Origin: Dimorphilus gyrociliatus
Taxonomy: Eukaryota > Animalia > Annelida
DNA length: 64,000 nucleotides
Assembly (NCBI GenBank): GCA_904063045.1
Contig: CAJFCJ010000005.1
Coordinates: 1,069,988 to 1,133,987, forward strand
Direction: 5' to 3'
Of this stretch, positions 4,586 to 37,000 are shown one piece after another. The notes under the pieces are model-generated. The model made no database searches and was not told the origin of the DNA. It saw only the letters and a list, made by a program, of their open reading frames with translations. Numbering within the stretch: position 1 is the stretch's first letter; each line of letters opens with the position of its first letter. A program made the position numbers and the translations under genes.

Positions 4586-6692
4586 CGAGATAAATGTGTC
4601 TTTATTACTTCGTCATGACTCAGTTAGTGAAGTGTGGCGACAAACTTTGTTTTTCTTCCCTTTTAACGAGCAGGGCGGCGCTTTTCCACATGTATCAAAA
4701 TGTAAAGCGATAATATAAATTAACTATAAGGTTTTTATTTTCAATACATTGTTTGTGTCCTTTCTTCCGTTTCCAAGGTATCAACAGGCGTCTACATACA
4801 GAAAAAAACTAATTGTTCTTTTCTTTTATTCCATATACTGATGCTTGACGTCTATTTTCTCAATTGTTTGTAAAGTTTCTATCAGCAAAGTTAAAAGTAC
4901 TCGGCATTGAAAGAGGCAATATAGAAGTTCAAGTAAAACAACTGTTTACCCTTTTAGTGGCCTTTACAATAAAATAAAAACATTTTAGATCTCAACTCGT
5001 TTATTAAAAGCTGAACTGCTGAGTTATTGCATAAAAAATAAAGTCTTATTCATTAAAGGATTAGGACAGTAGTTTATTTATCCTGTTGTAGTTGAGTAAA
5101 AAAGATGAGGAGGGGGAAAATGGAGTTTATTTTGCGATTTATATATCAAAGGAAAAAATAATTGAGACTTTGTTTGCGACAAAGTGTTTATTGAAGTAAA
5201 ATGAGGATACAAACTAGAAAAGAATCTCCCCAGTATTGACATTGTAAATGTTTATGAAGTAAAAAGGTTGATTTAAACTAACTACCAAGAAATCTAAGAC
5301 GTAACAAAATAATAAAAGGCCTAGTAACAGTTTATTGAGTACAAATAAAAAAATCTCAAGTGAGGAGAGAGAGAGAGAGAGAGAGAAGGAAAGACTATAA
5401 AAAACGACAATTCTTAGAATTTCCACAAGTTTACCAGAGATAATGTATTTTCAGTGAGATATTGCGTAAAAGATCATATAGGTTGTGCTTTTTAGTTCCT
5501 CTCTCTCTCTCCCACACTTTCTTTGAATTTGCTGATTGTAGTTTATATTTGTCACTATCTATATTAATTAATTATATAGAGACATTTATTTGCATAGTTT
5601 CTATATTTCTATTCACAGATGCATTCCAATACATTCTATTATTGTTCTACATTGATTAACTATCAAACAACAATTTCAGTTTTCAATTATCTAATATTTT
5701 CAATCTCTGAAATAGACTACCTCATCAATAAAGTACTTTTTTGATCATTAAAATGCTAATTTCGCTAACGAACGCCATCTAGTTGATTTTTAAACGTATG
5801 CATACGCGCTGGCAAATGCATCCAGATGTATATATATATATATATATAGCTAGATGTACAAATATATATTAGTAATATATATATATATATATACTATATG
5901 TATATCTAATATATAGCTACGCCGCGTGGACATGAAAAGACTAATGGTTGTCAGTTTTTTCTTAGGAGAATTCAATCAAAAGTTCGATGATCGAGAGAGA
6001 CACGCAATAAATCAGAGTGAAGAATTCATTCTCTAGTTTCTTACTAAGTTTTTATTATTGGATATATACAATATATATGTATATATATATGCCATTCAAA
6101 TGAACTATCAGGCTATTTATCCTCATTCTTACTTGTCATATAGGTTGTTAGCCTCTTGAGACTACTTTTTCATTGCGGATAGTTGCTTGACCCTTTGATA
6201 TCTGTTTTACAATCAAAATTTGTAGGCCTAAGTTATCTAGGGTCAAGATTCTAAAAGAAAATATCATTTCATACAGATATTAAAAATTTTACCCTACTAC
6301 TTTATCTTTTTCCTTTTTCTCTTTCTCACTCTAATTGACTCTCTTCTTTCTTATCTTTATCCACTTTTCTTAATCTTTATCTATTATAGATTTCAAATAG
6401 TTTTTTAACACATCAACCTTTAAAGTATCTATAACTCTCGTTTTGTTCTATGTCATAGGATAATATGTCTATTGTTCTTGTAAAAATTTACCTAATTTTT
6501 CAGACTTACAGACCATCTTTTATCAACTTTAAGTAGAGTCTGTATATCATTTTCTCTTCAAGTCACCTCCTTTTAGCCCTCAAGTCTCAATAGTATAACC
6601 TAGTAACATATGAGATTAATTAAATTTTCATCTTTTTCGTTCTTGTTTAGTCGGTTTTTATGTTAGAGAAAGAAGATAAAAAACTAAATGCT

Positions 6693-6768
6693 AGAGAGAG
6701 AAAGAGAGACAGTGAGTGAGTGAGAGAATGAGTGAGTGGGTTGGCGAGTGAGTGAGTGAGTGAGAGAG

Positions 6769-6802
<34 letters not shown>
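6693..6802. repeat. Compound (GA)n/(GAGT)n microsatellite
   Basis: Directly visible tandem GA and GAGT units. Confidence 0.9.
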
Positions 6803-6805
<3 letters not shown>

Positions 6806-9264
6806 CCAAGTTACTCTATCTATTTAGCCTCAAAGAAGATGATGCAATAAATCAGTCAGCTTAAAGTCATCTTTAATATGCTTTCATACTTTTTCTACTC
6901 ATTCTTTCTTTAAAATATTTCAATTGCTTCTTGGCTTTGTTCACTTTCTGAATTCATTTAGATTTAAATATTTATAAAAGGAAAGATAACAATTCAACTT
7001 TTCCCTCAATTTTCAAAGATTCAAACTTTTTACTTTTTCTTTTCTCAAAGTTAGTGAAAAAATACATTAATATTCGTAATTCTGTGTTTTGGACTTCGTA
7101 TTTCATTCATCTAGTAGGCCTTTAAAGAATATGAAACTTAATACTAAATTTTTGACCTCTTTTAGACATAATAATTTTTTTCAATTTCGGTTTAATGTTT
7201 CAGCTATAGTGAAGGTGAGATGTCTAATGTCTCGACTATATTTCAAGACCGTAACTAACTAGCTGCCAAGGTCTATAATCTTATATTTTTCTCTCGAGGT
7301 TACTGACCTCTATTGTCCCAATTTTTCAAAATGCTTTCTAAGCTTTAAAGAAACATTTTCGCATTTGTTTTTTGTTAAAATAGTTGCGTAATTGTAAAGT
7401 TACATAGCAAAATCTTATTTAAAAGAACTATAACGCCTTTGAATGAAGTTATGAATGAACAAAAAAAAAAAGATGAATGACAGTTCTTTTTATTTTTTTA
7501 AATGAAATTATGTCATATTTAATCTTATATATAGTAGTGATAATTATAAAATACAATAAGTTCCTATGCTAAGTTAAATAGTGCAAAGCACTTTTATAAT
7601 CTAATTTTTTTTATAAATGTTATCCATAGAAGTGTCTTAATTTTCAACATTATTATGATTAATTGATCTGCTTTAAATGTCTGCGCAACATGATTTTTAA
7701 TTGACCTTAAATCAACTTCATTTAAGTTTTATTACCGTCTTGACATTCCTTCTCTATGGAAATCACATATTTGTTTGTAATTTTAACTCTTTCGAATTTC
7801 TCATCAAAAACTTTTCCTCTCTGTTCTAATTTAAAGCCAAGAGATGTAGTCTTAGTTTATGGACAACCTCATTGTTTATAGAGACACGTCTAAACTTTTT
7901 ACAAACAATTTTTTTTTCGGGCTAGAAATGTTTGGATTATAGGCTGTCAACAGTTCTATTTCTGGAAGTTTATAGCGGAAGTAGGATCTAGACGCGTCCA
8001 ACAGACTATGATATATATAACAAAAAAAATAATCGGTTGTTTACCCGACCTACTTTTATTTCAATCCGGTTGTAATTTTGAACCGATTTGGTAGAGTTTC
8101 TGACAAACTTTACAAGTTTGTCATGCACTTAAAAAGGATATGAGCCAGATACAAAAAACGAAGAAAAAGGTAAGGAATGTTGTCAAAGGAGAGTATAAAA
8201 AATCAAAAAATTAGATATTTCTAACTTACATATAATCGCCAATTAAGATTAAAGAGATTTAGAAAAAAAAAGAGATTAAATCAAAAGATCTCTATATTGT
8301 TTAAAAATCATTTTTAAAACAACTCTTGAAAGATAAAAAGTTCAAAGGCTATGTTTAACTTAAAATAGAAGTGAACTGTAAGATATCTTATATAAACTCT
8401 TTAAAAACAATGAAAACAGATTGTGTAATCCACACGATGATTCTTTATTTTATAGTTAAAATTCATACAATAATAAAAATCTGTTAAATATAAAAATAAT
8501 TGGTTTAACTGTCTAAGGTGTAGGCTGTAAAAAAATTATTAGGGAATACGATATACTAGAACAAAATTAAAATTTTTGGTCTTCCCTTTCTCTTTCCCTC
8601 TCTCTCTCTCTCTCTCTCTCTCCACTTTAACATATTAAGATGTTCAAGATAAAACGATTATGAAAAATAAAAACCAGGTCAATGCCTCTTATACTAGGAC
8701 TAATATGCGGAAAATACTATATATCTTTTATCTAATTTAAATTATAAATCAGGTCTATATTACCTTTTTAGGACACTTTGTTATCAAGAGCTATACTCTG
8801 ATAATTAAAAAAAACTTTATAACCAAGTAAATGACAATGATACGGAAATCCTTGCCTTGGTTTTTCCCCTTCTGTTTTTATAGACTACTAGTAGACTAGA
8901 GCTTACGTAAAACTTTCGATTTCACCTTATTGCAAAGGTTTTATTCGAATTATTCATTATGGTAAGAAGTATTCCTTTAAAAATGATATCATTAATAAGC
9001 CGTATATATGGTTAACCACCTTAACCATTTTCGTAAGCTTTCTGTTCTCTTATAATTGTATTAGATGAATGTTTATTCTAGTAGACAAATACTATTCATT
9101 AAATCAGCGGGATATCTTTACATATCGTCCAAGTAATTTCTGTTGTTTTTGTTCAACATCTTTGGGATTTCTATTTAAGGCCTAGCTCTTTTCTTAATGT
9201 AAATCTCAACGTATTAAATTTAAGTGGTGAAAAAAGCATATACAGTATATATGTACAATATGAT

Positions 9265-9320
9265 TGAATGAATGAATGAATGAATGAATGAATGAATAAA
9301 TAAATAATGAATGAATGAAT
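9265..9320. repeat. (TGAA)n tetranucleotide microsatellite
   Basis: Directly visible TGAA units with a TAAA interruption. Confidence 0.9.
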
Positions 9321-10207
9321 AGTACAATAAAACAATTTTATTTGTGAAAAAATCTCAGTTATTCAATAAAAAAAATCATAAAGTAAAAAAATATCTTTTC
9401 TTTAGTTTGTCTTTTTTTTTTTTTAACTTTAATTTTTATTCTTTTTGAAATAATAATTAAAAAAGAAATATTACAATTTTCCCCTTTTTGAAGGTTTTTT
9501 TTTCTGGGCTTTTTTTTTTATTTTGACTAATGATGGAAAAATAAATTTTGCTTTTCCTTTCAAGTTGATCTGAGAACCAAAAACAGTTTACTTTTCGATA
9601 CTATTAAGCCTAAACTTGAAATAATCAGTCTATTGAATACCTTTCTTTCTTTTTTTTCTTTCTTTTTTCTTTTTTTACAGTGGTAATAAACCAATAATTT
9701 ATAGGTCATCGAACTATAACGATAAGAACAATTTTTTTTCATCAGATCCGATCACTACCCGCGTGTCTTTCATTCAAAAGCCAAACAACAAACAAACAAT
9801 ACTGTACAGCAAAAATATGTACACAACTGGGTTGCAGTAATACGAAAATATACGCATACAATATGTAAAGAAATACATATATTTTTGTTTACAGTCCGAC
9901 GTGTATACGATATATAAATACGTATATACAAATTATAGATTGTATATAATGAAGACATTACTAAAGGAGAGAAAGAGAGGCCTATACACTTTATGGTTTT
10001 TTTGGTTTGCAGTCGGCAATAAATAGAAATAAATAGGGAAAATGTTTGAACACAAAAAAAAACAGTTCCAACACGCTTTTTTAAAGATAATTATGAAGGC
10101 AGTGTAAAAGAAAACAAACATCCCCATTTCTCCGCTAAAAGCAAACTCAGATAAGAGAAATAAATTGAGAGAAGAACTTTTAATTTGGAATGTTTGCAAT
10201 AAAAAAT

Positions 10208-11131
10208 TCAATCAGCTTTTTTGAACCAATTTATGAGTTTTTTAATCGAATTGTTTCCAATTCGTTCCGAAAGAGGCGATAAAATTATCTTCCTTGGCTT
10301 ACACCGATAGCGACCCCTAGCACAGGTCAGTCTTGTTCCTTTCCGGCATTTCAACTTTCTATTTTTATTACACTTTTTTCTAGGTTTGCTGGGCGTCGGT
10401 GTCCATTTGCATTGATTATGTTTTGTCCCTCTTGTTCGTAACGTACCATTCCGTCTCACACACAAGAAGGCCTTACGCTTTTTTCTAAAGTGCCTCCTCT
10501 TCGCCCTCCGATAGGGATAAGAACAATGTTGAATATAAAACTTGCCTTCCTTGGGCCTTTCGACAAACTTGCAGTCGCTGGTCATATTTTTATAATCTCG
10601 AGTCTGAAGAAAACAAACGAAGAAAAGATATTAAAGATTTTTGAATTTTTTTTTAAACCATTTTTATATGCAAAACACAAGGAATTATCGGAATTAATCC
10701 TTTCGAAAAGTTACGTCTAAATAGAGCTTAAAATTCAATGCACATCCTACTCGCGTACGCTTGTAATAAAAGAGAAACCACGTATGTCTATGTCTTCGAT
10801 TTAGGATCGTTCAAGAAGATTCAATTACGGTTAATATTATACTTGTATATCTGACAAGAGTACTTAACAACAGTTCTCTCTCTACTTCCTCTACTGTACC
10901 AGAATTTACTGTTAAAACGTCAAGTGTATAGTTATTTATAATCCTATATATATTATTTTTTATTTATTAATAAACCCGCCAAATATTTACTGATTTACAA
11001 GTTCATTCTTTTGCTCCGATCAAGATAGAGAGACACAGCGTCCATCTCATTCATTTTGGTCTCTCATCTTTCGTTTTTCATTTTGCGATTTGCCTTTTTT
11101 GTGTTTTTGGCTTCGTGTAAAGTTTACGAGA

Positions 11132-11176
<45 letters not shown>

Positions 11177-11953
11177 AGTAGTAAATATTCTCTTTGTTTT
11201 CTTTTTGTTAAAATTATCACTGCGAAGTCAGTCGTGTATCGAATTTATATAAACATTTACGTAAACAAATGTTTCTCGCTTTTCTCTAATCTTACACTCT
11301 TAACACTTTTCTAGTTTTCAAGGGCGAAAATAACTTATTCATATTACATACTAAAAAAAGTCTGACGTCTGAATTTCATCAACTTCTCTCTGGTAAAAGA
11401 TTTTCACCAGGGCGCGCTTAAAGAGACAGTATCTAATGCATCACAGTAACAGCGATAGATGGCGCCTTAACAAATGGATTATCAATCTTACCGTTTCTTT
11501 TATGTAGAAAGTATTATTCCTCCACATACACAACATTAACCATAGGCCGTTGTCTAATTCTCTATAATAACTAATCGGGATTTTTCCTCCGCATTCGGAT
11601 GTTCCGCTATCATTTATGGCGTTCACCCTCTTCAATAAGGCTGTTTTTAAGATCAAAAACATTCACAATATCGATTAATCATTGTGCAAAATCTCTAATC
11701 TACTGTGACCTAAATAGTAGTACATACCGGTCGAGCTGTTTATCCCATTTTCGCAACTCTTTCTCGTAGGACCGACCTCTTTCAAGCGAAGAGAGCATTG
11801 ATTTCTGTAGTTCACCATGAAAAAAGTACTTTCTGCACCTACACTACGCTTTCCAACGTCTTTCGTCAGAATAAAATTTTGTCTGGAACTTATACAGTCG
11901 AAAATGATTAGGGAGAGGAAAACTAGGAACGAGTTTAGAGGAATTTGTAGCAT
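10208..11953 (-). CDS. Divergent fibroblast growth factor, 256 aa, secreted; exons 11953-11728, 11640-11492 and 10603-10208
   Basis: ATG 11953 gives a hydrophobic leader MLQIPLNSFLVFLSLIIFDCISS. Introns are phase 1 then phase 0, at the positions typical of the FGF core. Motifs MLCMWRNNTFY, TSDCKFVE and FLCVRRNGTLRTRGTKHNQ match FGF LxMNxxGxLY, ECxFxE and VALNKDGTPR. Confidence 0.75.
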
Positions 11954-12311
11954 TTCCGTACATCGTATCTGTATGTTTTTAGAACGGTTTCCGAAAATTC
12001 TACATCCATATATCCATATAATAATCCAAAGAAAAAATAGGAAGAAATCCGTAGTTCCTTGCAATACAACGTCTGGATTTTAAAAGGAGAACTGGCAGAG
12101 AAAACTTCGTAAGCTCCGCCCAAATTGGCAACTGGTTCCTTATTGGCTAAACTGGTTTTCTTTAAGAGTCTATTCTGAAAATTGTAATAAATTTGTAATA
12201 ATTGAATAGATTTTGAAATTATTTGGCTTGTGTGGCCAGCTGTTCAAAAGTGGTTATTACCGATACCAGCTTATCTCACCCACTAATACACATTAACTTG
12301 ACTATATACAG

Positions 12312-12350
<39 letters not shown>

Positions 12351-13280
12351 CCTAACTGACTGACATGATCAAACACGTCTGTGTCGGAAGGTACATTTAG
12401 GTTGACGTCAGCTAGTTGAGAAATGCTCAAAAAATTAGGAAATACAAGTTCAACATAAATTGTTATAGGCCTTTTGTTTATTTCATGCAGAAATAACCGT
12501 GCTAGACCAGAAAAAACCTAATGAGTCATTTTACGTTAAAAATAAACTGAACGTTTTAGAAATCTCAAATAGATTCAAGACAATTAGAAAAAAGGGCGGG
12601 GGAGGAGAAGAAGAAGTAAAAGAAGAAGAAGAAATAGAAGAAAGGGCTGTTATTTAGGATATAAGACATAAAAAACGAGTTTTTCCAGTTAGTCTTATAA
12701 AATGTTATATATATTGTATACATATAAAGATATAAATTTATATATATATATATTTATATATATATTGAAATTTTTATCTACTCATTAACACACTTTCTTT
12801 ATCATGAACAAAATTAGAATTATCTCTAATCTTACGTCAATTTCATTCACAATGACTTCTCTTACAGATTGTATTTATACATTTTAGAGAAACGAGCAAT
12901 AACGATTTCTCATCTTTATTTACTTCCCTTCCTTGTTTTCCAAATTAATTAATAAAGAAAATTATTCAAATTGTTTAAATATAGATCGTCCCTGTTTTTT
13001 TTATTTGTTAGTATAAAGAATATATTTATGACCCGAATTAACTTCATAAATTAAAGATAGATGTATTTAATACCTGTTTTTTTTTGTAGTTTGATGTTCT
13101 CTCTATACAGTTATGATAATATTTGAAGGAAATAAAGCGAAAATATGCTTAATTTGTAATCTTTGCTTGATAATTCAGGCGATTACGAAATATAGTTCTA
13201 TATCACATGTGCTTTCCGGATTATAAGAGAAAATTCAACAAATCTTACTTTTAAATTTTACGCGCTAAGAATTCCAGCTG

Positions 13281-16200
13281 ATGCGCATGCGCTGTAATCT
13301 AATGGCGACTAGACGAATTCTGCAATCTTTCTTCTGCAATACACGTTATTATTCCAATATCGTAGCTAAATCTAAGCTAAAAGCTCCTCTTTTATTAACT
13401 GGCATTGGCATAACCTACTTTTATGCGAATCATAAACGAACATGTCAAGCTGTTTATGCCCATGTAAGTTTGCTTTTTTCGGCCTTTTGTTTGGCTGTGT
13501 TTAATTAAAACGAGTCACTGTGAGTGATCAATCCACAAAAACCTAATTGATTATGACAGAAGTTACGGAAAAAATTAGCGAACCCTCGTAATTTTCGACT
13601 TTAGATGGTCGAGCGATAATAAGTGGATTTGACGTATAAATTATACAAAAGAATCCCTATTACGTAGATCAAAGAACGTTAGACGCTGTTAAATTAGATG
13701 AGGGTTACGTAACTGAACGAATTGGGAACTATTTCGAAGGCGATGACACTTCTAACCGCGTTTTTTCTTTTTTCTTTTCCAACAGGCTAACACCTCGCCT
13801 GCTCAAACTCATAGAGAATTGAGATTCTTATCATTTGCCTCTGTGGATTTTGACGGCAATGTTTATATGACACCGCAAGATTTTCTGGATAGCGTTACCA
13901 ATGAAATACCTAAAGGTAACTTTTTCAAAACCCAAGATACAAAAACGCCACTAACATGCATTTCACAAGAGAGCGACCAACAATCAAAGACAATAACAAT
14001 TATACAATTAATAAGTTATATTATTATTATTATTACTATAGAAAAATAGCACTGATTCAATTGTTGTAGGTCATAGGTCAATCTTTAAGGCACTCGATTT
14101 ATCTATAGCTTCAGATTTGACAGTGTGATGACTTTTTGAACTATTTTTCCCTAACTATTTATCCATTATCTTTTAAAAAGAGCTTATACCGACATTTCAA
14201 AATAATAAATAAAAAAAAGAAGAAAAGATTGAGCAGAACGACCAGCTTAGGAGAATAATTGGAATTTTATTGTTTTAATATATGAACAAACAATAACTTG
14301 CTAAATTATCCAAAAAAATCTATTAAACTATTTGTTAAGGAGAAAACGCTAATGTTTTTTTTCTCTTTCTTTTTTTTTAATAGTTTATTTTACAATCAAG
14401 CTTTAAGGATAATTTTTAATTCTCTTGCTGTATAAAAACCGATATATCTCAGTTTTATTGACTAATAAAGAAGATAAGATTATTTATTTCTTTAAAGAGA
14501 TATTTAAAATATTTATTACATAATAGAATAATTACTTACAGCATAGAAGTTTTGTCCTTCTAGGCCAACTTTCTTTGAGAAGTTGTCATAGAAAGGTTTT
14601 CAATATGATGTATCACACGAAATAACTTCTCTATCAACATATTTGTTCTTATATATTATTAAAAACACCGCAATAATTATTAATTTTCGCTGACAATGCA
14701 AACTCATAGCCTATAAGTTACAGATTATTAGCTTATTACCTTTAATTTATATGTATTCTAAAAATTGTTGTTATCCTATTTCTTCATTCTTTTTTTTTTC
14801 TTTTTTGGTATAGAGCAAGACCAAAATAAAAAATTGATCACCTATAGCTGCTTTTAAAATTTCCGTTTAATAGTTGTTTAGAAACAGAGCATACTCGTCT
14901 AGTTTTTTTTTTATTTTGCTGATGTAGGCCTTTAAATGACCTTCGTAAATGTCAATGACAGCATTTTTTCTACCCTGAAAAACTTTTAACTGTTTTGGAA
15001 ATGATACAATTTTCTTTTTGTTATTGTAATTTTACCAAGTATTACAACATTTTTCTTGATACATTAACTGTCAATGACCCCGACCTGTAGGCGGGCAGCT
15101 GTCTACATATATAGCGCGTGTAACAATGTATCGTGAATTGTTTACAAGAGTTCTTAAAAAGGCTCGGAGTGCAGGAGACGATTGCGTAATCGGAAAATGT
15201 CCAGGCACGTTTTCCTTAATCCGTTATTGTGATGATTCGCTTACGGAGAGAGAATTAGACGTGATAAATTTTACTACTTGAAAGAAAAGCTCAGTTGTAA
15301 AGTTATTATAGAAGCCAGACGGAAACCGGATCCGTTTATTATCAGTAGTAGACTGTAGAAAACTCAACGGGTGTTTTCGACTATAAAAGTCTGTTACCTT
15401 GGTAACAGACAAGCCCTAGACATCCGATAAAGAATATGAAAAAAAATGCACCCAGTGCAAACTTCAAAAGATAGGGAAAGTGACGTACATTGTTCAATTG
15501 TTTATACTTTAACACGTTAAATCAATATACCAATGGTTCTGTTATCATTTCGCTATCGTACTGAAATATAGGTCGCTAATATCTGTAAGATGATTTCCAG
15601 ATGGTTATTGGGAGAGACTAATAGTATAATTCCTAATTTGTATTTTGAACAGCAAGGGCAGGCAGGAAAAAGTTGGAAAAGAATGACGTTGAGAAACTCT
15701 TACGAATGACACCGTCCAAAAGAAAAAGTTCTGAAAAATTCTTAAGAGGAACCGGAACGAACGGTAAGCGTTAGACAACTCTAGAATATCTTTAAAGCAT
15801 TCCTTCGAAATTTCGTAATTCAAGTCCTTCAAAGGTCAATTTTCTTTCCGGATTTTGTACAATGTTTAGATACACTTAACCTAATTTTTCTCAATGAGAA
15901 AAGCACCAAAAGACAATAATATAGGACATTTTAAATATTAAATATATCCATATAATCGGTTAAAAGTTATACTTTAACAAAACTTATGTTACTATAGAAT
16001 TGAAGTCTTTTTTTAAAATCAAACCTTGGACTCTGGATGTCGAATTTAACCATCCGATTGTACAATTAATATCCTACCGTATAAGTTTAAAGTTTATTAA
16101 CCTCTTATTGCAATATTTTTAACTTGATTTATCTTCAAACCTGTAACTTAAACACTTTTTTATAATAATGTTATTATCTTAAAGAAAGAGGATAGAAAGA

Positions 16201-17338
16201 ATTAATAATGATCATAGAAAAGAGCAATACAATTTGTAAACTTTCAAGTTTTTCTTCGCAATAATTTCCCCCAATTAAACGCAATATATACATATCTAAT
16301 ATATACTGTATATATATTAGTATATTATAAGATTCAGTATTCTTATCTGATAGGCTTGATTTTCTTTTGAAATTTATCTTTACTTATTTTCAAAATAAAT
16401 TGATCTTATCAATTTGGTTTTTAACTCTACGAAGTAAAAATATTGTTCAGGCAAAAAGAAAAATTTTACCCTTACCCTTTTTTTTCTCTTTTTCTGTCGT
16501 TTTCCCTTTTCTCACCGCTTTCTTCTCTATTTTGTTTATATATCGTTTAGACTTACCGACTATTTTTTTAAGGTCTTTTCATCAATTTGCAATTAATCGT
16601 CTGCCAAAAAAAATCGATTTCAAAACATGACAATACTTATTATAGTCTTTAACATCGCCCTAAAAGTACGATTGCATAAACTTGTCTCAATTTGCTCCCT
16701 TCTGAATGCAATTAAGTCATTAGGTACAATTACGTACAAATAGATTATGTAATTACATTTTAACTGAAGGCAAAAGACACCTTCGAAAGTGAGATGGAAA
16801 TGAGTTAATGTCAAATATTTTCTTCACCCTCCAAATCAAAAATTCAACTGTTACTTATTTTACATTTGTTAACCAGAACATATACCTATCATCGGATAGA
16901 GAAATTACTTCACATAAATTAAAATTAATGTCTTTTTAGGTTATTTTCTATTACTTTAAGTGATAATAAAATGAAGGATTTTGTATAAATTGAAAGAGTT
17001 TTGAAATAGGTAGGTGAGTGAAAGAAGGACTTTCTGTAAGGTATTTTAATATGAGGAGCAAGTAGAATCTTGTCAACATTAAATGAATTTCTCGAAGAGT
17101 ATAAGAGGGTAATAGCTACAGTACACAACGTATACAATACTCGGTATAGTATGTTTGCAGATACATGTACTATATATAGAGGGGCATATACTATGAAAAA
17201 AAAAAGGAAGGTGGGGGGAGAATTGGAAAGCCACGGGAAGCAAAACAGAAAGAATTAAGATAAAAGGGAAAGTGTTTTGAAAAATAAATATTTTATTCAG
17301 AATAGAATCAAAGTCACCAATAAAAAGTTGTAAAAGAG

Positions 17339-17380
<42 letters not shown>

Positions 17381-17749
17381 ACATCTTCATTGTAAAACTT
17401 TCAACATTTTATTTAAATGACAATTTTATGGTATAGGTACGACCGAATGAAAGAAATATAATAGAATATATATATACTGTATAAATAGTAGAAACAAGTT
17501 TAACAAACTCGCTCTATACGTGTGTCTATAATTATCTATCTTAGTTCTCTTATCCGGCTCCAATATTTAATGATAGTTTAAAAAGATAAAACCATAAATA
17601 GATTATTTTAGCTACTTTACTTAAGGCGTACCATACGGTGTTCTTTTACACAACTTCTCGAATATTATATCATGCCCGTATGCCTCTTTAAAATATTTAC
17701 GACATGTTATTTACGCTAGATTTCATCTGTAAAACGTGGAAAGAGAGAG

Positions 17750-17785
<36 letters not shown>

Positions 17786-20700
17786 GGGGGAAGCGAAAGT
17801 TACTTTCTTATAAATATTTGCTCTTAACGAGTTATTTAGTAATTTCTAAATATACAGTATAATTAAAAATTTTTCATAGCAAATGACAGATTTAATAAAG
17901 GTGTTAAAGGATTATTTACATGTTATTCTCGAACGTTTTCTATTACAATAAAATACAATGTAAATGAATACGATCCAAAATTATTTACAAGCCAGTTTTT
18001 ACTCATCAATTATACTCTTCTTTTCGTACGATTATCGAATAACTCTGTTAAAAATTAATTAAAGAGAAAGCAAACACCTAAATTCGTATTTTAAAATACT
18101 TTGTTTTTAAAGAAAGAAAAAGTTATTGTTACTTGTTTACTTAAAAACATTGCAACAATTATAATTTTTCTGTTATATTTTTCATCAATCATAGAGGTGA
18201 ATGTTGAAAAAAAATATAACCAAATCTAATTGCACTTTCTCAACAACAGGGAAAGTGAAAAGTTCTTAACAAAATAAACAGAATACATCTGCCTGCTCGT
18301 GCCCAAACGAATAATTAAACACTTTCCTTGGGCGTCTAATTAAAAAGTTTTCTTAACTGATTTAACGGATTACGTCACGGATCCTGGGGTTTTACACTTT
18401 TAATGCGATTTGTTTCTAATTTGGCAGACCTTTAACAGAGTCGGTGCCTGTGGCTTACCCCCATTTTTCTCCTTGAAGTTAACTTTCAAAGCTTGTACAC
18501 GTACCGATTGGATCTCGTGTAAACATTGGCGTTTGCCAAACTTTTTCCACGCTAAGCTTTCTTCATTTATCTATTTCATTCAGGAGATAAGATTTCGTTC
18601 GATACTGAACCATTAATTAGAAAAAAATGCTTTTATCAAAAATTTGCCAATTGATCGTCTACGTTAGATTTATTTAGCAATCTTCCCCCCCTTCCTTTTG
18701 ATTTATATCGCAACGTTGATCTTTGTTTAGGAGAGTTTGTTATTTCTTACTCCTTAACCCACAAATCTTATTCTAAACCAAGTATCTAATGTGAAACTAG
18801 AAAAAGTATTGGTGAGTCAAAGAAAAAAAAAATTGGTATAATTGCCAATTCGGCGGAAAACCTTTTTAGAAAGTCAACAAAATACCAAGAATTTTCACTT
18901 ATTAGCTATATAGATCTATTTAAGAATAAAGCACGTCAAAATTTAGGTCTAACATACCGACTTGAGTCAGTCATTAGTAAAAATTTTATACCTTGTCATT
19001 TTAACACTTTAGCTAGATGTTTACTCGAATAACTTCGTACGACTTTGTTACCTCTTTCTTTAATAAATACGGTCGTCGTAGGTGGTGTAATTTGATTAAA
19101 ATCTTCGAAATATATATTTCTACGGGATTGTATCAAATAAAAAAAAATCGCACCATATTTTAATCTAATATTGATCTATTCATATTTATGTCTTTAAAGA
19201 GTTTATCGTATTTCTCTTCTAATTAGAGAAAATTTTCTACGATCTTAATTTAACATTGTTTTCGAATGACAAAATTATTAAAGAGTCTTTCATCACTTAA
19301 ACTATTAGCCTAATAGGCATAAAACTAATTTAATCAAAGCAAAATACCTTATCTTTTACTTTCCCTCTCTATTGTCAATGAATATTTGATATAATAGTTT
19401 GATTTTTAACAACCCACATCCACTTTATATGACGTTATTGTGGATAGGTATTGAAATCACCGACAATTGTTGACATTACGTGCTGGACAGCGGTCAATAA
19501 CGAATTTATTGTTTATTTACAGGTCTTATTTCGTACACGGAATATTTATTCTTGCTGTGCGTGCTTACAAGTGAGTTCAAATGTTCTGAATACTCGTAAA
19601 CAATTTGTTTATTTTACTTTCCCCCGTTCAGAACCAAGATCGGGATTTCGAATAGCCTTTAATATGTTTGATACGGATGGCGATCAACGCGTGGACAAGA
19701 ATGAATTTTTAGTAGTATGTACAATATTTTTTATTATATATACAAGTATATCCGTATATATATCGGAATATATATATATACTATGTATACATTCTAATAA
19801 GTAATATATATATATATATATATATATTCATCTTTGAATATATGTACTATCTCTTTTTTATCTTTATTATTGATACCAATCGTCTGTCGATTTCTTTTTT
19901 CATTCGTCGGTTAGATATTGAATATTTCTCTATTTGAATGCAAAAAATTCATTATTATTATTATTAGTTGTAGTGGTCTTAGATTATTTAAGGAGAATTG
20001 TACACTTAGTATCAAGTTTTTTTTTCTTTTTATCAAATTTATCTAAATATTTTTTCTTCTAAGCATGAATTATTTTTCATATAATGTTAAATTTACGAAA
20101 ATCTCTTTTCAGTTATTTTTTTATTTCTCTCTTAATTTTTTTTTTCTTTTTTTTTTTAATTAATAAGACAAAAAATATATCGCTAAACACATTCAAGGTC
20201 ACAAACAAATCAATCTAATCCGTAGACTAGACAATAACCTTTGATTTAATTAGAATATGTTTGACAAAATTGAATAACTGTCCTCTTATTATATTCTTAA
20301 GAAGAAGATTTAAAGTGATTTAGTTTAACTGTTCGATTAAGAGAATAATTTAAACTTGTCTAAATTTTAAATTAATCTAATTTACAAAAGTAGGGTAAGA
20401 ATGTTTTTTCTTTTTTTCTTAGTTGAAGATATTTTCCGTACTGATTTAAAGCTTTTGCTCTCTGATATATAAGAAAAATTAATACCAAAAAGTAAATTGT
20501 AGTATTTTATCAATTCAATGGACATTTAATTTCTCAATAAGCTCGGTAAAGTTATCGAAAAGGCTTCTGAAGGAGATGGATGGAGTACAGCAAATGTAAA
20601 AGAAGATAGCATAAATATGGTATAATATAAAAACAAAATATAACAACTATAACACCTTCTATTTCTAGTCGCAAGGTTTTGGTCTTAGCAGCTTAATATG

Positions 20701-21573
20701 GTCACTTAATTATCTTTCTTCTTATCTAACCGAATAATTAAATTAAATAGCTTTACTTCTATCTAAACAAAACTTTTGCACATCATTTCAAGAAAGAAAT
20801 CCAAATTGCTTGCTAATATTTGCGAAATATTCGAAAGCACAAGGCGAACAAAAAGAACAATAACACAAAATAGAATAATTAATTGTCAAGTTTTATGTTA
20901 AAAGAACAAAAATATGATAAAGATTATTTTACTGCAGATAGTAAATCATTTTAATAATCTCGTCTGTGGTTTTTACAAAACGTTTAAAACTTTCTACTAA
21001 CCAAGGTCAACGATCATTATAAATGAACTTGATTTAAGACAAATCTGTAAAAATCAACATACGATTATTATCAGAAATTGTGCAAGTTCACTATGGTGAG
21101 AGAGAGCTAGTGAGAGAGGAAAAAGAGTATTTTTATCATAGTTAAATATACACCTCATAAAGGCTATTAATTAAATTTTAAGGACATATCTCTATATAGT
21201 AGATTAATTACAATCTATTGTATCTTCTATCCTCATTAGTAGAGTTTTTGTTTTAGAGTAGATAATTTTAATCTCTTTTTTCTACGTTTGATCAGTACTT
21301 ATTAACAATTAGAGGCTAAAAAAGAAAAAAAAGATCATTGTCTCTCAGTTAATATAGCATATTTCTGTTTTTCTTATATAAGAATAGAAAGGAACAGGAA
21401 TAAAATATACAAATAACATCTCTACTTGAGTCATCTCTGTTTTGTTTATTTATCTTAGAGAAAGGAAGAAGTACTTTTATTCATTATATCATGAAAATTT
21501 ATGGAAATAATAAAAGAAATTTATAGTTTTTCCATTAACTGAAATTTTTAAATATTTTTTTAAATAGTTTTTT

Positions 21574-21604
<31 letters not shown>

Positions 21605-24192
21605 GCTCTCTCTCTCGCTCTCCCCCCCCCGCTCTCTGGCTCTCCCGCCCTGAGCCTCCCTTCCCCCTACCCCTATTACTTTTACCGCCTAGAAGCCGTC
21701 TTCCATTCTCAAGCACTCTCGAAACAATTAATTCATTTCTCCCCTCTAACACTCTCTCATCATCTTATCGGTACCCATTACTCATTCTCTATTACAAGAT
21801 AAAACGGATAAAATTAAGACTTCCCCTAACATGAATTAGGAATTTCCTCCTTTTGGTTTTTTGTTTTTTTTTACGTTCTGCAGTTGTTGGACGTGTTCGA
21901 AAGAAACACGCAGGACCTAGAAGTTAAACGGTCGGACAACCACCGAGCCAATATTTGGAAATTGTCGTTTGTACGTTTGCTTTTGATGAAAAAGCGATCG
22001 CTTTCCCATTGATTTTGTTTCGCAGGAGAATGTGTATTTTTTTTTTAAGTATACGCGTAAATGTATGATGCATGTACACAGTATTATATATATTATACTG
22101 TATATATGCTATACATACACACACATATATATATATTAATATATATATATATATATATATATATTAGTATATATTTATATTTAAATTTACTGTCAATTGT
22201 TTTGAAACCGGGTGATTTTAATTTTGCTATTTAACTTATTTGTTGTTATTAACGTTTTATATTTATTTTTTGCATCTAATCATCATTTATTATTATTTTT
22301 TTTTTTTTTGGGTTTCTCTCTTTCTCTCTTCTTATCTATCGGTTTTGTTCTTTTAGTTTTTCTTTGCACGATTCGCGAAAATATTAAAAACTAAAAACAA
22401 AAAAAAAATTAAAAAGAAAGTGGCAATGGGAGTTTTAAAAAGATAGAATATACTCTTTTTTTAGTATATACAGTTTAATCTGTCTTTTATACTGTATAAT
22501 AGGAAAAATATGAGCGACTATTCTGTTTCAAAGAAATAGTTTATTCTATACGCAAATAAACTTAAAGATTCTAATTAAAAATAACTTGATATCAAAACTA
22601 CAATCAAAACAAACATAACATAGTTTATTTTATGATAACTGTTGCTACCATACACTTTATATACTCTGGAGAAGCTATAGTCATATTGATAAAGTGAAAG
22701 ATTATCTATCAATGAAATGAAATGTCTATAATTCTTATTATATATATATATTTATATTAATCTCGTTTTTCTTTTCCTCTTTTAACTCTTTATTCTTACT
22801 ATCCGCTTTATAAGTTGGTAAATTTTATTAATTGATTTACTGTATTGATTGAAAGGAGAATATCGATGAATTGGCATAGTTTATAACTTATTTAAACTAC
22901 TTATGATCAAATTTTCATCGATATACGCTAAATTCTATCAAATTAATACCAAACTGAGGTTATTAGGTTCTTATTTTTATAATGTTCGAAAAACATCCGT
23001 AACAATTGCTCCAAATGCGAATTGGTGTTTTTTTTTTGTCTTCGAACGTACCAAACTTATACGACTAATTGTACTTTGTTATGTAATAATCTTTAAAAAT
23101 AGGATTATCCACATGCTTGCCACTTATTAACCGTTTAGAACCAATAGCTTTTTGCATGCCTTATTTAACAGAATGGACGGTATTTTATGTGTATAAAAAA
23201 CAGTATATATAAAGGTTTTGCGTCGTACCAGCATATTGACCACTTTATACACGAAATTATACGGTGCCCAAACTAATGATGGGGCTGTCCGTGGTCATCG
23301 TCTAGACATATTCAATCGATTGAACAAGCGTGTCATTTGAAAATCTTATTTACCGAACAGGTTTAACCGAAACTGTCAAAAAAAAAACAAATTTTGTATA
23401 TTCATTAGTATAATATAAAAAAATCAATCAACAAACCAACCAATTAGCAAAACAGAAACCTCTTTGCCCACTTTCTTTTTTCTTAAGCTAATTAGAGGAT
23501 TTTGCGATTCATCGCTTCATTAATCCATGCGATTGCCTTAATCCAAGATAAACCGCAAAATAATCTACCGATTAATCTGTTTATAATTAAGAATTAACCA
23601 TGCACGGTTTATGCAGCTAGAAAGAATAATACCGCAAAACGCCGACGATAACCCAGCTAATAACGACGTACGTCTTCAAAAACATTTGCTTCTTTTATAT
23701 ATACTTTTTATTCTTTCTTCTCAAAATGCACGACCCCTTTCCTCACTCTCTCTTCCCCACCCTCTCCGCTTTAGTTTTTGGTTTGAAAATTCTATTTTAT
23801 TACTCCTTTTCTTACACTTTCTAATGCATTAATATTTTAGTAAGAAGAACAAAATTCTATAATCGCCTGTTCTTTCTTTATTTATTTATTTACTCTCTCT
23901 CTCTCTATTTTTTTTTCATCTTTTCTTCTAACTTAAATGAATTTTATCCATTTCTGAGAAATTAAAGAGGATGTTGATTGTATAAATTTGTTTCTTTTCT
24001 CTTTGTATATGATTTATATTGTATATATAAAATGATATTTGCAAATGATTCCTCTTTAATCTACTTTCTCTTGTGTATGTGCACGAAACATCCGCTTTAT
24101 TCTCCCACCCCCCCTCTCCCCTCCTCTCTCGCTCTGTATCAGCCTGTCTATGTATCTCTCTCTCTCTCTCACACACACATATACACACACAC

Positions 24193-24229
<37 letters not shown>

Positions 24230-25873
24230 TGTGTGTGTGTTTGTTCTCTAGCTATTCTTCTTTTCTCTTTTTATTTTATTTATATTTTTTAAATTTTCTC
24301 CTTCTATTCTATTCGTGTTCGGGCTTGTTAGAGCATTGATGGCATTTTTGTGGTCAACCAATGGCCGATTGTGTTGTTTCGCTAACGTTGCATGTGGTCT
24401 CCGACATATATATTTATGTCTGTTTATAGAAGATCCTTATTTGCATGATCTAGTTTAATTTTTCTTACATTTTTCAAATTTCAAAGCGAAAGCATGCTGG
24501 GAATGTCGGACGCTGGTCAACCGCCCTGCTATTGTTAAATATCCAGGGCTGTTGTATAATTAGATTGAGGCGTCCAGGCTTTTTCTACAATTTACTGTTG
24601 TTATTTTCTTTGATTTGTAGCCCACTGACTTTTCCTCAGTGCACGATTTATTTTTTTTTGAGCTAAGAAACTATTGCTTGTGCTATCTTCCTTAACTTTT
24701 CGTGTGTGCTGCCATCTATCCAACGTTCGTTCATTGTCTCATCATTTTTGTCTTCTTTCCGATTAAAGGAACAAGAGACAAGTGTGCAAGATACAACTCT
24801 AACCTATCACTTCTTTGGGTCTAGAGGCAGAGACACGCTCAAGTACGAAGAGTTCTCAAAGTTTATGGAAAATCTGCAAACGGAAGTATGTATATATACT
24901 AATATATATACAATGGGTATATGTTGCGCCATCTATCGTACATTAGATGAAATTCGTAAAAGCAACATCTTGAACTTATTCAGGACAAAGTTAGAGAATG
25001 TAGGAATTTTTACGTCATAAATCAAGAATAAGCTGTTTTGTTTGGCCATATTGATGAATGATGTAATAAATATGTATTAAATCTTCCCTCTCAAAGCAGA
25101 CTCTGGAGCAAATGGACATATTTTATTTTAATAATCGACCATTAATATTCTATCTTTTGAATTTAATGAATTATAAAAGCTGCTTCAGAATATTAACAAA
25201 TAACAATATAAAAACTAGGTACTGCAATCCGAGTTTGAAGACTACGCCAGAGGAAAGTCAACCATTACAGAGGAAAATTTTGCAAAGATTCTCCTCCGCT
25301 ATACAGTCTTATCGGAGGAACAACATGACGAATATCTAAATAGATTACGTAAACGTATAACTAGTGGCAAGGTTGGTTTTATTTCTCTCGTCTTAAATGA
25401 TAAGAAGACAATTAAATCTTGAAAGGAAATAATAAGGCTATTGTTTTTTTTTTATTTTTTTAGGGAATCGACTTTAAGGCATTCAAAGATTTCTGTCAAT
25501 TTTTGAATAATCTGGACGATTTTGCAATTGCAATGAGAATATATACGTATAGTGAACAGCCGATTTCCGAGAGTAAGTGTCTACTTTAATCTCTCTTCTC
25601 TTCCAGTTTTACATGTTGAATTATCGTTATATATTTTCAGGTGAGTTTAGAAGAGCAGTTAAAATATCGACTGGACACGAATTGGACTTTCACGTTGTTC
25701 ATACAGTGTTTCAACTATTTGATGTAGATGGCGACAATCAATTGAGCCATAATGAGTTTATAACTGTTATGAAAGATCGCGTCCATAGAGGGTTTAGATC
25801 ACAAATCTTCCAAAAGAAGAGATTCTGGGAAAACTTTAAGGGCTGTGTCCGCCGAGAAATGAAACACTCCTAA
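13281..25873 (+). CDS. MICU3: Mitochondrial calcium uptake protein, MICU2/3 type. Exons 13281-13463, 13786-13915, 15653-15763, 19523-19570, 19632-19714, [cassettes 20542-20619, 21884-21970, 23617-23667], 24769-24885, 25219-25371, 25464-25572, 25641-25873
   Basis: Mitochondrial-type leader; YMTPQDFLDS, GLISYTEYLFLL, EF-hands DTDGDQRVDKNE and DVDGDNQLSHNE, DTTLTYHFFG, MKDRVHRGF and a C-terminal Cys (FKGCVRREM). All junctions are GT-AG and phase-compatible. Confidence 0.92.
15389..15410. promoter_or_regulatory. Perfect 10-bp inverted repeat containing an RFX X-box-like motif, in MICU intron 2
   Basis: GTCTGTTACC-TT-GGTAACAGAC. The core GTTACC-TT-GGTAAC fits GTNRCC(N0-3)RGYAAC. TATAAAA lies at 15382-15388. 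Confidence 0.45.
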
Positions 25874-34035: not shown

Positions 34036-37000
34036 TTAATCCATTTTTATATTGACGTAAATATATCGTATAAATCGTAGACTTGCGAAAAAAGCTACTG
34101 TCCCAAGCATTAAGAAAAAAGCGTAACATCCGAGAATTGTGTACCCAAAAAATTCAACAGTTTGTAACATTCCAGACATGTTCGATCGCTTAAAGTAATA
34201 AAATAATGAGTATAAGAAAACGAAACCTCCCGTCGATCTGTGGGACAAGTATTATTAAGTAAATCTTACTATTTCATTATTTCTAAATTGGATTAAAACA
34301 ATTAAAAGTTAAACTTACCCTGCACTGAAGACGCTTCTCCACCACCATCTATAATCTTCCGTGCTTAATTGGAAATAAGTAAGTGCAATAGATATACAAG
34401 CAGTTACGGATAATAGTATGGCGTAAACGACAAATAGAATTCCGTAGAGAGTGTACTGCTGCTCTCTACCCCATAACGTAGAAAATATATAATACAATTC
34501 AACCGATATGGCGCTAAAAGGTAGGAATCCTCCAATAACACAATGAGCCAAACAACTCCTATACCAGGGCACACTTGGTATTTCTCTAGCTATATTTTTT
34601 GTTCGGCAAGGAGCGTCAAAACTTCCCGCCCAATTTTTACCAAATATTCCACCAATTATTGTTAATGGATAGCCTAAAAATATCCATACACTCAACAATA
34701 ATAAGACAGTTTGCCATGGAAGTGCTTGGGTTGATCCGTATGCCCAAGCTACCGAGTTGGTAAAACTCCATACAATGAAAAATGGTAAGGCGAAGAGGGC
34801 TGAGGTTAAGTTGATATTCCAAACCCAGTTTTGCCCTCCCATTTTCCTATACATGTTGGCCGCTACATATCCACTTATACAAGATGTAAATGCGTAAAGG
34901 AATATGGAAGCGGCATTGATAGATCCATGCCGATGAACGTTAAACATTCCTAAGACTGCCATAATAAGTATTCCCGTAGCGACTGATATGAATTGACTGC
35001 CAACACCTGAAAATGATATAAATAATACATACACGCTTTATAGCATTAATAAAGCACTCGTACCGAGAATAGCGCAAAATAAGGTTTTGAATTTGGGAAA
35101 TCTGAACACATCTGAGTGAATAATTTTCCATCCGTTATCATCTTCAGGTATGTCGTCTTCTTCTTCATCGCCGTTATATCTCGCAAAATCATTCTTAAGC
35201 ACTCTGGTCTGAAAGAGAAGTAAAATTTACAGTTAACAAAAGAAAAAAAAAAATTTAGTATTATTGCACATATCACTTTGGAATGGACATTCAAAATATC
35301 TTTTATTAGTTTAATGTGTTTAACTTGGATTTTCACAGTAAAATATATGTATTTACTTTTGTAAAATTATTTTTAAAAGCCGTCTTAAGGGAGTATTTCT
35401 CGTCTTAGAGTTTCCTTTTTTTAATAGATTAGTCTTATTCTGAGCGCTTAATATAATATGGCACGTATAATTTTATTTTGCTATCTACACTCGTAAAGAA
35501 GTAAACGTATACGAATCATAAAAAAAAGGAAGAATAATTAATATTCCTATCTTTTTTTAATTTGTACCCATTTTATAGATTACTACAAGGGGGAAAATTA
35601 TTTGCTTACCAGAATGATAATCACGAAACCGATAAGGAGGAAAACGAGTACCATGGAATTAATAATCGATAGCCAGTGAATTTCAAGAGTTTTGGGAAAG
35701 AAGTTATTGTTATTCGTTCTTTTAGATCTTTCTGAATGTAGCATTCTATAGGGGAAGATGAAAACAAACACCAATTAGTAACATCTAACCAATTTGATAT
35801 AACAAGAAATGTCTTACTTGCTGGGATGCCATTTAACGCTATAAGTAAACGTCACTTTAAGAGGCGCTTGTTTATCATCCAAATTGGTTGGTTGTCGTTC
35901 TTTAGTCGATACATTTGCGTATATAATCTAAAGAAAGCGAAAAAAATTATTAATAAAATGACAGTTCAAAGAAGAAGCTACCAAACAATAAAGAATAGGC
36001 AACAATAGAGCTAGAGATGCGATCAGAAATTTTTCCTATATCAAAGTAATAAGATGGACAATGGTAGAAAGAAAACCAATGACGCAACAAACTGATTAAC
36101 TAATGGCTTCTATACACTTCATCTATAATCTTTCATCTCTTTTTCTATATCGATAACAATCGCAATTCGCCGCATAGGTTAATTCGGAATAAGAGTTTGC
36201 TGGAGATTATACCCGAGTCTCATTAAACATATACGTACATATTCTACTTTATAGAAGAAAAGTTAAAGCTTCTTTCTACATTAAAGCAATAATGAATTAT
36301 TCTTCGTAAAATATACAATGCTATAGAGAATCTAAGGAATCTCCAGGATCTTTTTCTATATTTACAAATTTAGCCTTATATATAAATATGGCCAGTCGCA
36401 TATTATAGTATATTCAATGTCATAGTTAAGATTGAACTTGTGCTATTTTTGACAGTAGTAACAAGAAATCAAATAGTCTCGCCTTATAAGATTTCTGTGC
36501 TACTACGCTTTATATATTGAGAGAAATAGTAGAAAAAGTAAAAAATGCGGAGGAAGGATAGAAGATAAAAATACAATTACAGATTTATATACGCCTCCTA
36601 AGCCTATTAATTTTTGTTTTCTAATCAGTTGGATTTGCCAAGTCAGGGATAAGAGCTTGCAGTCGGATTTTAACCGACTCGCATTAACGATGTACGCGTA
36701 CACGCACCTTTATTACAGACTGGCAAAGTAGAAAGTAAAGCTTCTTTCGACATTAAAGTAATAATGAATCAGCTTTTGATATAAAGTCACCCTAGGCCAG
36801 TCAATCTATTGTCACAAAGTACTTTAAGCGTAATTTGTTGAACAAAAAGCGGTGACGGGCATATTAGCTGCCGAAGGCGACGTCTTACGTTCGTTAGCCG
36901 TCACCTCTTTAGATGCCCTTTTCCACGCCTAACAAACCTGATCTCCGTTGTATTCGACATTAAATCGTAGATGCGTCCACAAATGAATCTTGTGTTTGTG

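Follow-up and report, generated by a model that had tools for sequence, protein, structure and literature searches.

A candidate, highly divergent FGF gene head-to-head with a MICU2/3 orthologue in the annelid Dimorphilus gyrociliatus

Introduction

Upstream of tetrapod FGF9, and likewise of FGF20, lie one EFHA (MICU2/3) gene and one ZDHHC gene (PMC3636272). The zebrafish counterpart, in which the developmental gene fgf20a is accompanied by its non-developmental partner efha2/MICU3, was one of two worked examples in a survey of 17 animal genomes that recovered 595 conserved ancestral microsyntenic pairs, 593 of them from the bilaterian ancestor (Irimia et al., 2012; PMC3514665). A pair qualified for that survey when its genes, with no more than 4 others between them, were neighbours in 4 or more of the 11 lineages; a 5′-5′ orientation was typical, and Fgf was among the families reported from ancient regulatory blocks (PMC3514665). 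Here we describe a locus of this kind in the annelid Dimorphilus gyrociliatus. The window, that is the whole stretch of DNA analysed, comprises 64,000 nucleotides (nt) of contig CAJFCJ010000005.1 (C5:1069988-1133987) from the 77.9-megabase (Mb) assembly, and all positions below refer to it unless a contig is named. A minus-strand gene at 11953-10208 that probably encodes a very divergent FGF ligand, referred to as the FGF-like gene, stands head-to-head in this window with MICU2/3, a mitochondrial calcium gene, on the plus strand.

Capitella teleta possesses Ct-fgf8/17/18/24, which served as the reference when FGF was scored as lost in Dimorphilus (PMC7854359). The Dimorphilus genome paper reported no bona fide FGF ligands and tied this loss to the loss of chaetae (PMC7854359), and the species has since been cited as a documented case of complete FGF loss (Shalaeva et al., 2021; PMC8224027). 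The nereid gene fgfA could not be placed by phylogeny, for which its authors proposed that ‘synteny analysis will help’ (PMC8224027). The FGF-MICU2/3 pair is ancient but already published, and an evolutionary inference drawn from it is correct without being novel; what is new here is that a known pair leads to an FGF candidate, apparently unannotated, in a species reported to have no FGF ligands.

Results

Arrangement of the gene pair

The FGF-like ATG (11953, minus) and the MICU ATG (13281, plus) lie 1,327 nt apart in divergent orientation with no gene between them, and the pair as a whole spans 16 kilobases (kb). A first-pass annotation, made by reading the sequence, had placed the two start codons 1.3 kb apart and diverging; this is confirmed, and the exons concerned are supported by RNA. 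With a MICU2/3 partner, zero intervening genes and a 5′-5′ divergent orientation, the locus agrees in partner, spacing and orientation with the published ancestral pair. It resembles the vertebrate FGF9-MICU2 (EFHA1) and FGF20-MICU3 (EFHA2) pairs in that an FGF-type gene adjoins a MICU2/3-type gene, in that the MICU introns are unusually long for the genome and in that the side of MICU is also the side on which a linked ZDHHC2/15/20 gene is found. The vertebrate FGF and MICU genes are presumably also arranged 5′-5′, as in the worm. The two differ in scale, the vertebrate pairs extending over hundreds of kb whereas the worm pair is contained in 16 kb with a 1.3-kb spacer, and the worm ZDHHC gene is 220 kb away and not adjacent, unlike in the vertebrate trio. 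In addition the worm FGF is barely recognizable and, unlike vertebrate FGF9 and FGF20, presents a classical-looking hydrophobic N-terminus together with a Cys-rich basic C-terminal extension.

The FGF-like gene

Three minus-strand exons encode a protein of 256 amino acids, from the ATG at 11953, which is the first in-frame ATG of the open frame, to the stop codon ending at 10208. The middle exon has 149 nt, the canonical length of FGF exon 2 being 104 nt. The gene model is as follows.

11728-11953, minus strand: exon 1 (226 nt), ATG at 11953, donor GTATGT, phase 1
11641-11727, minus strand: intron 1 (87 nt, phase 1), RNA joint 11640/11728
11492-11640, minus strand: exon 2 (149 nt), donor GTAAGA, phase 0
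10604-11491, minus strand: intron 2 (888 nt, phase 0), RNA joint 10603/11492, contains a (GA)n repeat
10208-10603, minus strand: exon 3, coding 10603-10211, TGA at 10210-10208
10110-10207, minus strand: 3′ untranslated region, extending at least this far, from a run X1 RNA contig spanning 10110-10345

The RNA evidence comes from run X1, a coral-tank metatranscriptome containing a worm approximately 99% identical to Dimorphilus gyrociliatus. Its contigs join 10603 to 11492, skipping 888 nt, and 11640 to 11728, skipping 87 nt, in agreement with the model. Both skipped stretches begin and end with CT..AC on the plus strand, which corresponds to GT..AG on the minus strand, and the shorter side of the joint 10603/11492 measures 95 nt. 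Coverage extends over 10110-10345, 10392-10603, 11492-11586 (joined to exon 3) and 11728-11882, while exon 3 of the X1 strain carries an in-frame insertion of 3 nt. The FGF-like gene is transcribed and spliced, since the RNA contigs join its exons exactly as modelled. Run X2 (organism A) yielded a MICU mRNA of approximately 94% identity but no FGF-like exons at a likeness of 90% or more.

A genome search with exon 3 showed the FGF-like gene to be single-copy. Exon 3 is contained in no protein of the collection searched, even though this collection includes the annotated Dimorphilus proteome, and hence the gene appears to be unannotated. The minus-strand gene at 11953-10208 is thus a real, expressed gene, apparently unannotated, with a secreted-looking and very basic product.

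The spliced transcripts in the coral metatranscriptome are approximately 99% identical to both the FGF-like and the MICU genes, which indicates that a Dimorphilus-like worm was present in that coral sample.

Evidence bearing on FGF identity

Exon 1 encodes a hydrophobic N-terminus (residues 8-18) and the putative start of the core, while exon 3 encodes in succession the motif DCKFVE...FY, the segment AFLCVRRNGTLRTRG and a four-Cys basic tail with a terminal helix. In a comparison of single exons with 24,736 Pfam models, exon 3, which would represent about one third of the FGF domain, matched the FGF family (PF00167) with E = 0.02 and 15.3 bits, its residues 8-60 aligning with profile positions 68-110 of 124. 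FGF is the only Pfam family matched by any of the three exons. Because FGF is the family expected from the MICU2/3 neighbour, the per-family chance of this match would on our estimate be about 1e-6. By eye, the strings D-C-K-F-V-E ... F-Y and A-F-L-C-V-R-R-N-G-T-L-R-T-R-G of exon 3 correspond to the FGF β8-β11 motifs. An AlphaFold2 prediction for exon 3 alone, with a mean predicted local distance difference test score (pLDDT) of 59, places low-confidence strands at DCKFVER, KFYIQHCS, FLCVR and GTLR, which coincide with the expected alignment of FGF β8-β11.

The exon-intron organization points in the same direction. Ancestral Fgf genes contain two internal core introns, ici1 and ici2 (PMC11733497). 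Exactly two introns, of phases 1 and 0, flank the middle exon of the FGF-like gene, which thereby presents the two-intron, three-coding-exon core of FGF genes, intron 1 approximating to ici1 and intron 2 to ici2. This equivalence was judged by combining an alignment by eye with the Pfam match, in which residue 8 of exon 3 falls on profile position 68, and holds to within a few residues; in Pfam coordinates the start of exon 3 is approximately 2-3 residues off the canonical ici2 position. The predicted protein is hydrophobic over residues 8-18, has six N-x-S/T sequons, basic loops and an isoelectric point of 10.5, and its mature part contains 12 Cys. This composition suits a secreted heparin-binding ligand, and the hydrophobic N-terminal segment fits the signal peptide proposed in the first-pass annotation.

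Other results weigh against this assignment. The Pfam score of exon 3, at 15.3 bits, falls below the curated cut-off of 24 bits, and the seven short queries of the same search also produced a spurious match to DUF5752 with E = 0.013. Exons 1 and 2 gave no match to Pfam or to PDB sequences, and none of the exons matched a PDB FGF in a phmmer search of the PDB sequences, where the best match, the archaeal protein Pcc1, was set aside as spurious. A six-frame scan of the whole genome with PF00167 returned zero candidates. For exon 3, a word-indexed search found no homologue, HMMER, run exhaustively against 1.84 billion cluster representatives, found no true homologue (its two matches, confined to the basic tail, were to junk repeat proteins and were rejected) and a protein-language-model feature search of the ESM Atlas gave no usable match. 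The AlphaFold2 model, built from exon 3 only, has pLDDT values below 50 across the putative core, and a Foldseek comparison of this model with the PDB returned zero matches. The putative core is approximately 15 residues longer than the canonical one. What we take to be the strict PROSITE FGF signature is not matched: D-C-x-F-x-E is present, but the G-x-L portion upstream of it deviates, as do the spacings. A search for FGFs by the authors of the genome paper had found none (PMC7854359), and the FGF9/16/20 assignment is drawn from synteny. With one sub-threshold Pfam match in exon 3, the intron phases and synteny as its basis, the FGF identity of the minus-strand gene is probable, not proven.

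The last 60 residues of the protein (10211-10400, minus strand) form a basic C-terminal extension outside the FGF core, with four Cys spaced C-x7-C-x7-C-x6-C. The prediction for this extension is a β-hairpin with pLDDT 85-88 followed by an amphipathic helix with pLDDT 70-86, and in databases it matched only junk repeat proteins.

The MICU2/3 partner

The partner gene has a MICU-type reading frame with EF-hand pairs, as identified by Pfam (matches at 19640-19741 and 25622-25870) and by alignments to MICU2 and MICU3 chains. Its structure is given below.

13281-25873, plus strand: MICU2/3-type gene, from RNA joint 13463/13786, a splice model and the EF-hand Pfam matches
13281-13463, plus strand: MICU exon
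13786-13915, plus strand: MICU exon
15653-15763, plus strand: MICU exon
15764-19522, plus strand: intron of 3,759 nt, the longest single one in MICU, single-copy DNA and candidate regulatory site
19523-19570, plus strand: MICU exon
19632-19714, plus strand: MICU exon with EF-hand 1
19715-24768, plus strand: 5,054 nt separating the EF-hand 1 exon from the constitutive exon that follows, with candidate cassette exons, otherwise single-copy
24769-24885, plus strand: MICU exon
25219-25371, plus strand: MICU exon
25464-25572, plus strand: MICU exon
25641-25873, plus strand: MICU exon with EF-hand and stop codon

The joint between the first two exons, 13463/13786, was present in two RNA runs, and a loose RNA end past 13915 matches the sequence from 15653 onwards. 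Comparison of the last exon with the human proteins gives 73.8 bits for MICU2 and 71.2 bits for MICU3 but 41 bits for MICU1, and another exon matches MICU3 best (24.6 bits). A separate MICU1 orthologue, unlinked to the MICU2/3 gene, is found at C9:797050-797217, where the scores are 71 bits against human MICU1 and 33-36 bits against MICU2/3. Judged by these sequence comparisons the MICU gene of the window is a MICU2/3 orthologue and not MICU1, because the bit scores favour MICU2 and MICU3 and a distinct MICU1 exists elsewhere; the MICU2/3-type partner named in the first-pass annotation therefore stands.

The MICU introns measure 322, 1737, 3759, 61, up to 5054 (a stretch that contains the candidate cassette exons), 333, 92 and 68 nt. 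The median intron of the Dimorphilus genome is 66 nt, and 944 intronic peaks in the assay for transposase-accessible chromatin with sequencing (ATAC-seq) lie in introns substantially larger than others (PMC7854359). The first-pass figure of introns ‘up to 3.8 kb’ corresponds to the 3,759 nt measured here. The two largest stretches are single-copy except for microsatellite-like matches of 30-90 nt, those of intron 15764-19522 elsewhere in the genome being 34-54 nt long, and an origin of the large introns as transposon insertions was rejected on the ground that they are single-copy. The idea that the large MICU introns may contain FGF enhancers fits the data, in that their sequence is single-copy and the ATAC peaks of Dimorphilus introns are found in the large ones.

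Within 19715-24768, candidate cassette exons are located near 20410 (VEDIFRTD...), 21883 (LQLLDVFERNTQ...) and 23040 (VFERTKL...). Direct joining of the exons that flank this stretch preserves the reading frame.

Neighbourhood of the pair

The region shared by the two divergent genes is the following.

11954-13280, no strand: divergent intergenic region (1,327 nt) with (TA)n and a purine-rich simple repeat at approximately 12600-12645

The purine-rich repeat at 12603-12645 (GAAGAAGAAG...) is of low complexity and draws hundreds of unrelated contigs in every run, so that depth figures at this position are meaningless.

On the MICU side, the sole ZDHHC2/15/20-like gene of the genome is situated at C5:1315547-1317069 on the plus strand, 220 kb past the 3′ end of the MICU gene. 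It scores 46 bits against DHHC15 and 42 bits against DHHC20, and the exon for its C-terminus occurs once in the genome. The ZDHHC-MICU-FGF trio of vertebrates is retained in Dimorphilus as a loose linkage in the same order; we take the order FGF-MICU-ZDHHC of the worm to be that of human chromosome 13. Several neighbours in and next to the window, such as a TM9SF gene at 34318-38767, presumably also have human relatives on chromosome 13, as do FGF9, MICU2 and ZDHHC20, and these neighbours hint at conserved macrosynteny.

On the other side of the pair, a neighbouring gene for a class-C G-protein-coupled receptor corresponds to NCBI protein DgyrCDS3316 (CAD5114175.1). A neighbouring zinc-finger open reading frame has no exact match in the protein collection. 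The stretch of approximately 5.5 kb at 4613-10110, from the start of the receptor gene to the 3′ end of the FGF-like gene, contains no open frame of at least 90 amino acids. For Dimorphilus this is a long interval, reminiscent of the gene deserts that follow FGF9/16/20 on their downstream side in vertebrates (PMC3636272).

Discussion

The vertebrate side of the comparison drawn in the first-pass annotation, with FGF9 and FGF20 beside EFHA genes, agrees with published accounts for tetrapods (PMC3636272) and for fgf20a-efha2 (PMC3514665), and the ancient FGF-MICU microsynteny that it proposed is a published conserved ancestral pair (PMC3514665) and hence not new. For other invertebrates, the linkage of FGF and MICU2/3 is taken here from the definition of such pairs by their occurrence in at least 4 of 11 lineages; the last MICU exon, used as a query for contigs of other invertebrates on which synteny could be surveyed, retrieved none. 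Beyond Irimia et al. (2012) and the Latimeria paper, no literature on direct FGF9/MICU2 synteny was found. Of the interpretation as a whole, the MICU2/3 partner and the ancient pair hold, together with the linked ZDHHC gene, whereas the FGF identity is probable and the FGF9/16/20 assignment is proposed from synteny.

The explanation we prefer, and which we regard as reasonably probable, is that the minus-strand gene encodes an extremely divergent FGF9/16/20-type FGF and still occupies the ancestral position head-to-head with MICU2/3. FGF is favoured because the family weakly matched by exon 3 is, of all 24,736, the one known as a neighbour of MICU2/3, and the ligand is most likely of the FGF9/16/20 lineage because it occupies the place of that ligand in the ancestral bilaterian FGF9/16/20-MICU2/3 head-to-head pair, the subfamily being assigned by synteny only. 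The sub-threshold Pfam score, the spurious match of similar E in the same search, the zero homologues, the zero support from fold comparison and a published survey that found no FGF would all be expected of an orphan, lineage-specific, secreted protein, basic and rich in Cys, whose FGF-like motifs and position beside MICU2/3 are coincidental, and a basic composition could raise the score by a few bits where the FGF profile is itself basic, in its C-terminal part. Such an orphan is nevertheless unlikely in our judgement. The chance match would have to fall on precisely that one Pfam family known from beside MICU2/3, the number and phases of the introns match those of Fgf genes, and the motifs DCxFxE and F-L-x-V-x-x-x-G-x-x-R-x-x-G are not compositional.

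The gene could also be a true FGF of another lineage, either FGF8/17/18 or the unplaced annelid fgfA, with a position beside MICU2/3 that arose secondarily or says little about orthology. The one FGF of Capitella is assigned to FGF8/17/18/24, and nereid fgfA is fast-evolving and unplaced; moreover the exon 2 string KRVNAINDSG resembles what we take to be the FGF8 string KRINAMAEDG. On the other hand chance would place roughly one gene in several thousand head-to-head with MICU2/3, the conserved pair in the literature involves an FGF20-type gene, and a ZDHHC2/15/20 gene is linked as well, so that another lineage appears to us even less probable than an orphan protein.

If the gene is indeed an FGF of the FGF9/16/20 lineage, the worm protein would be a β-trefoil ligand acting on an FGF receptor. 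The survival of the pair in a genome of 78 Mb might then reflect FGF cis-regulatory DNA interleaved with MICU2/3, as in a genomic regulatory block, and this DNA may lie in the 1.3 kb upstream of both genes, in the multi-kb single-copy introns of MICU, or in both.

Among annelid FGFs a parallel to the worm candidate is the fast-evolving second FGF of nereids, Avi-fgfA and Pdu-fgfA (PMC8224027), which is likewise a very divergent annelid FGF. The nereid genes nevertheless pass domain searches, which the worm candidate does not on the single exon tested. Capitella Ct-fgf8/17/18/24 is also an annelid FGF ligand, but it belongs to another subfamily, is readily recognizable and has no reported MICU linkage. 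The same synteny approach that exposed the worm gene could place nereid fgfA.

The pair itself being known, the evolutionary claim adds one more lineage to its distribution. For Dimorphilus, if the assignment is true, the published loss of FGF becomes a case of extreme divergence and the FGF receptors of this worm would keep a ligand; more generally, conserved gene pairs can then reveal signalling ligands that sequence searches miss. A broader proposition, which we advance tentatively and with more doubt than conviction, is that annelids scored as lacking FGF, namely Dimorphilus and perhaps Helobdella and the whole of Dinophilidae, have retained an ultra-divergent ligand of the FGF9/16/20 type, visible through synteny only. 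Should annelids keep such a hidden ligand, the proposed link between the loss of chaetae and the loss of FGF falls. The FGF-MICU2/3 block would in that case have survived in a genome in which most distal regulation has been lost, and its compact 16 kb would provide a minimal model of an ancient regulatory block and a convenient test of whether enhancers of a developmental gene reside within the introns of the bystander next to it.

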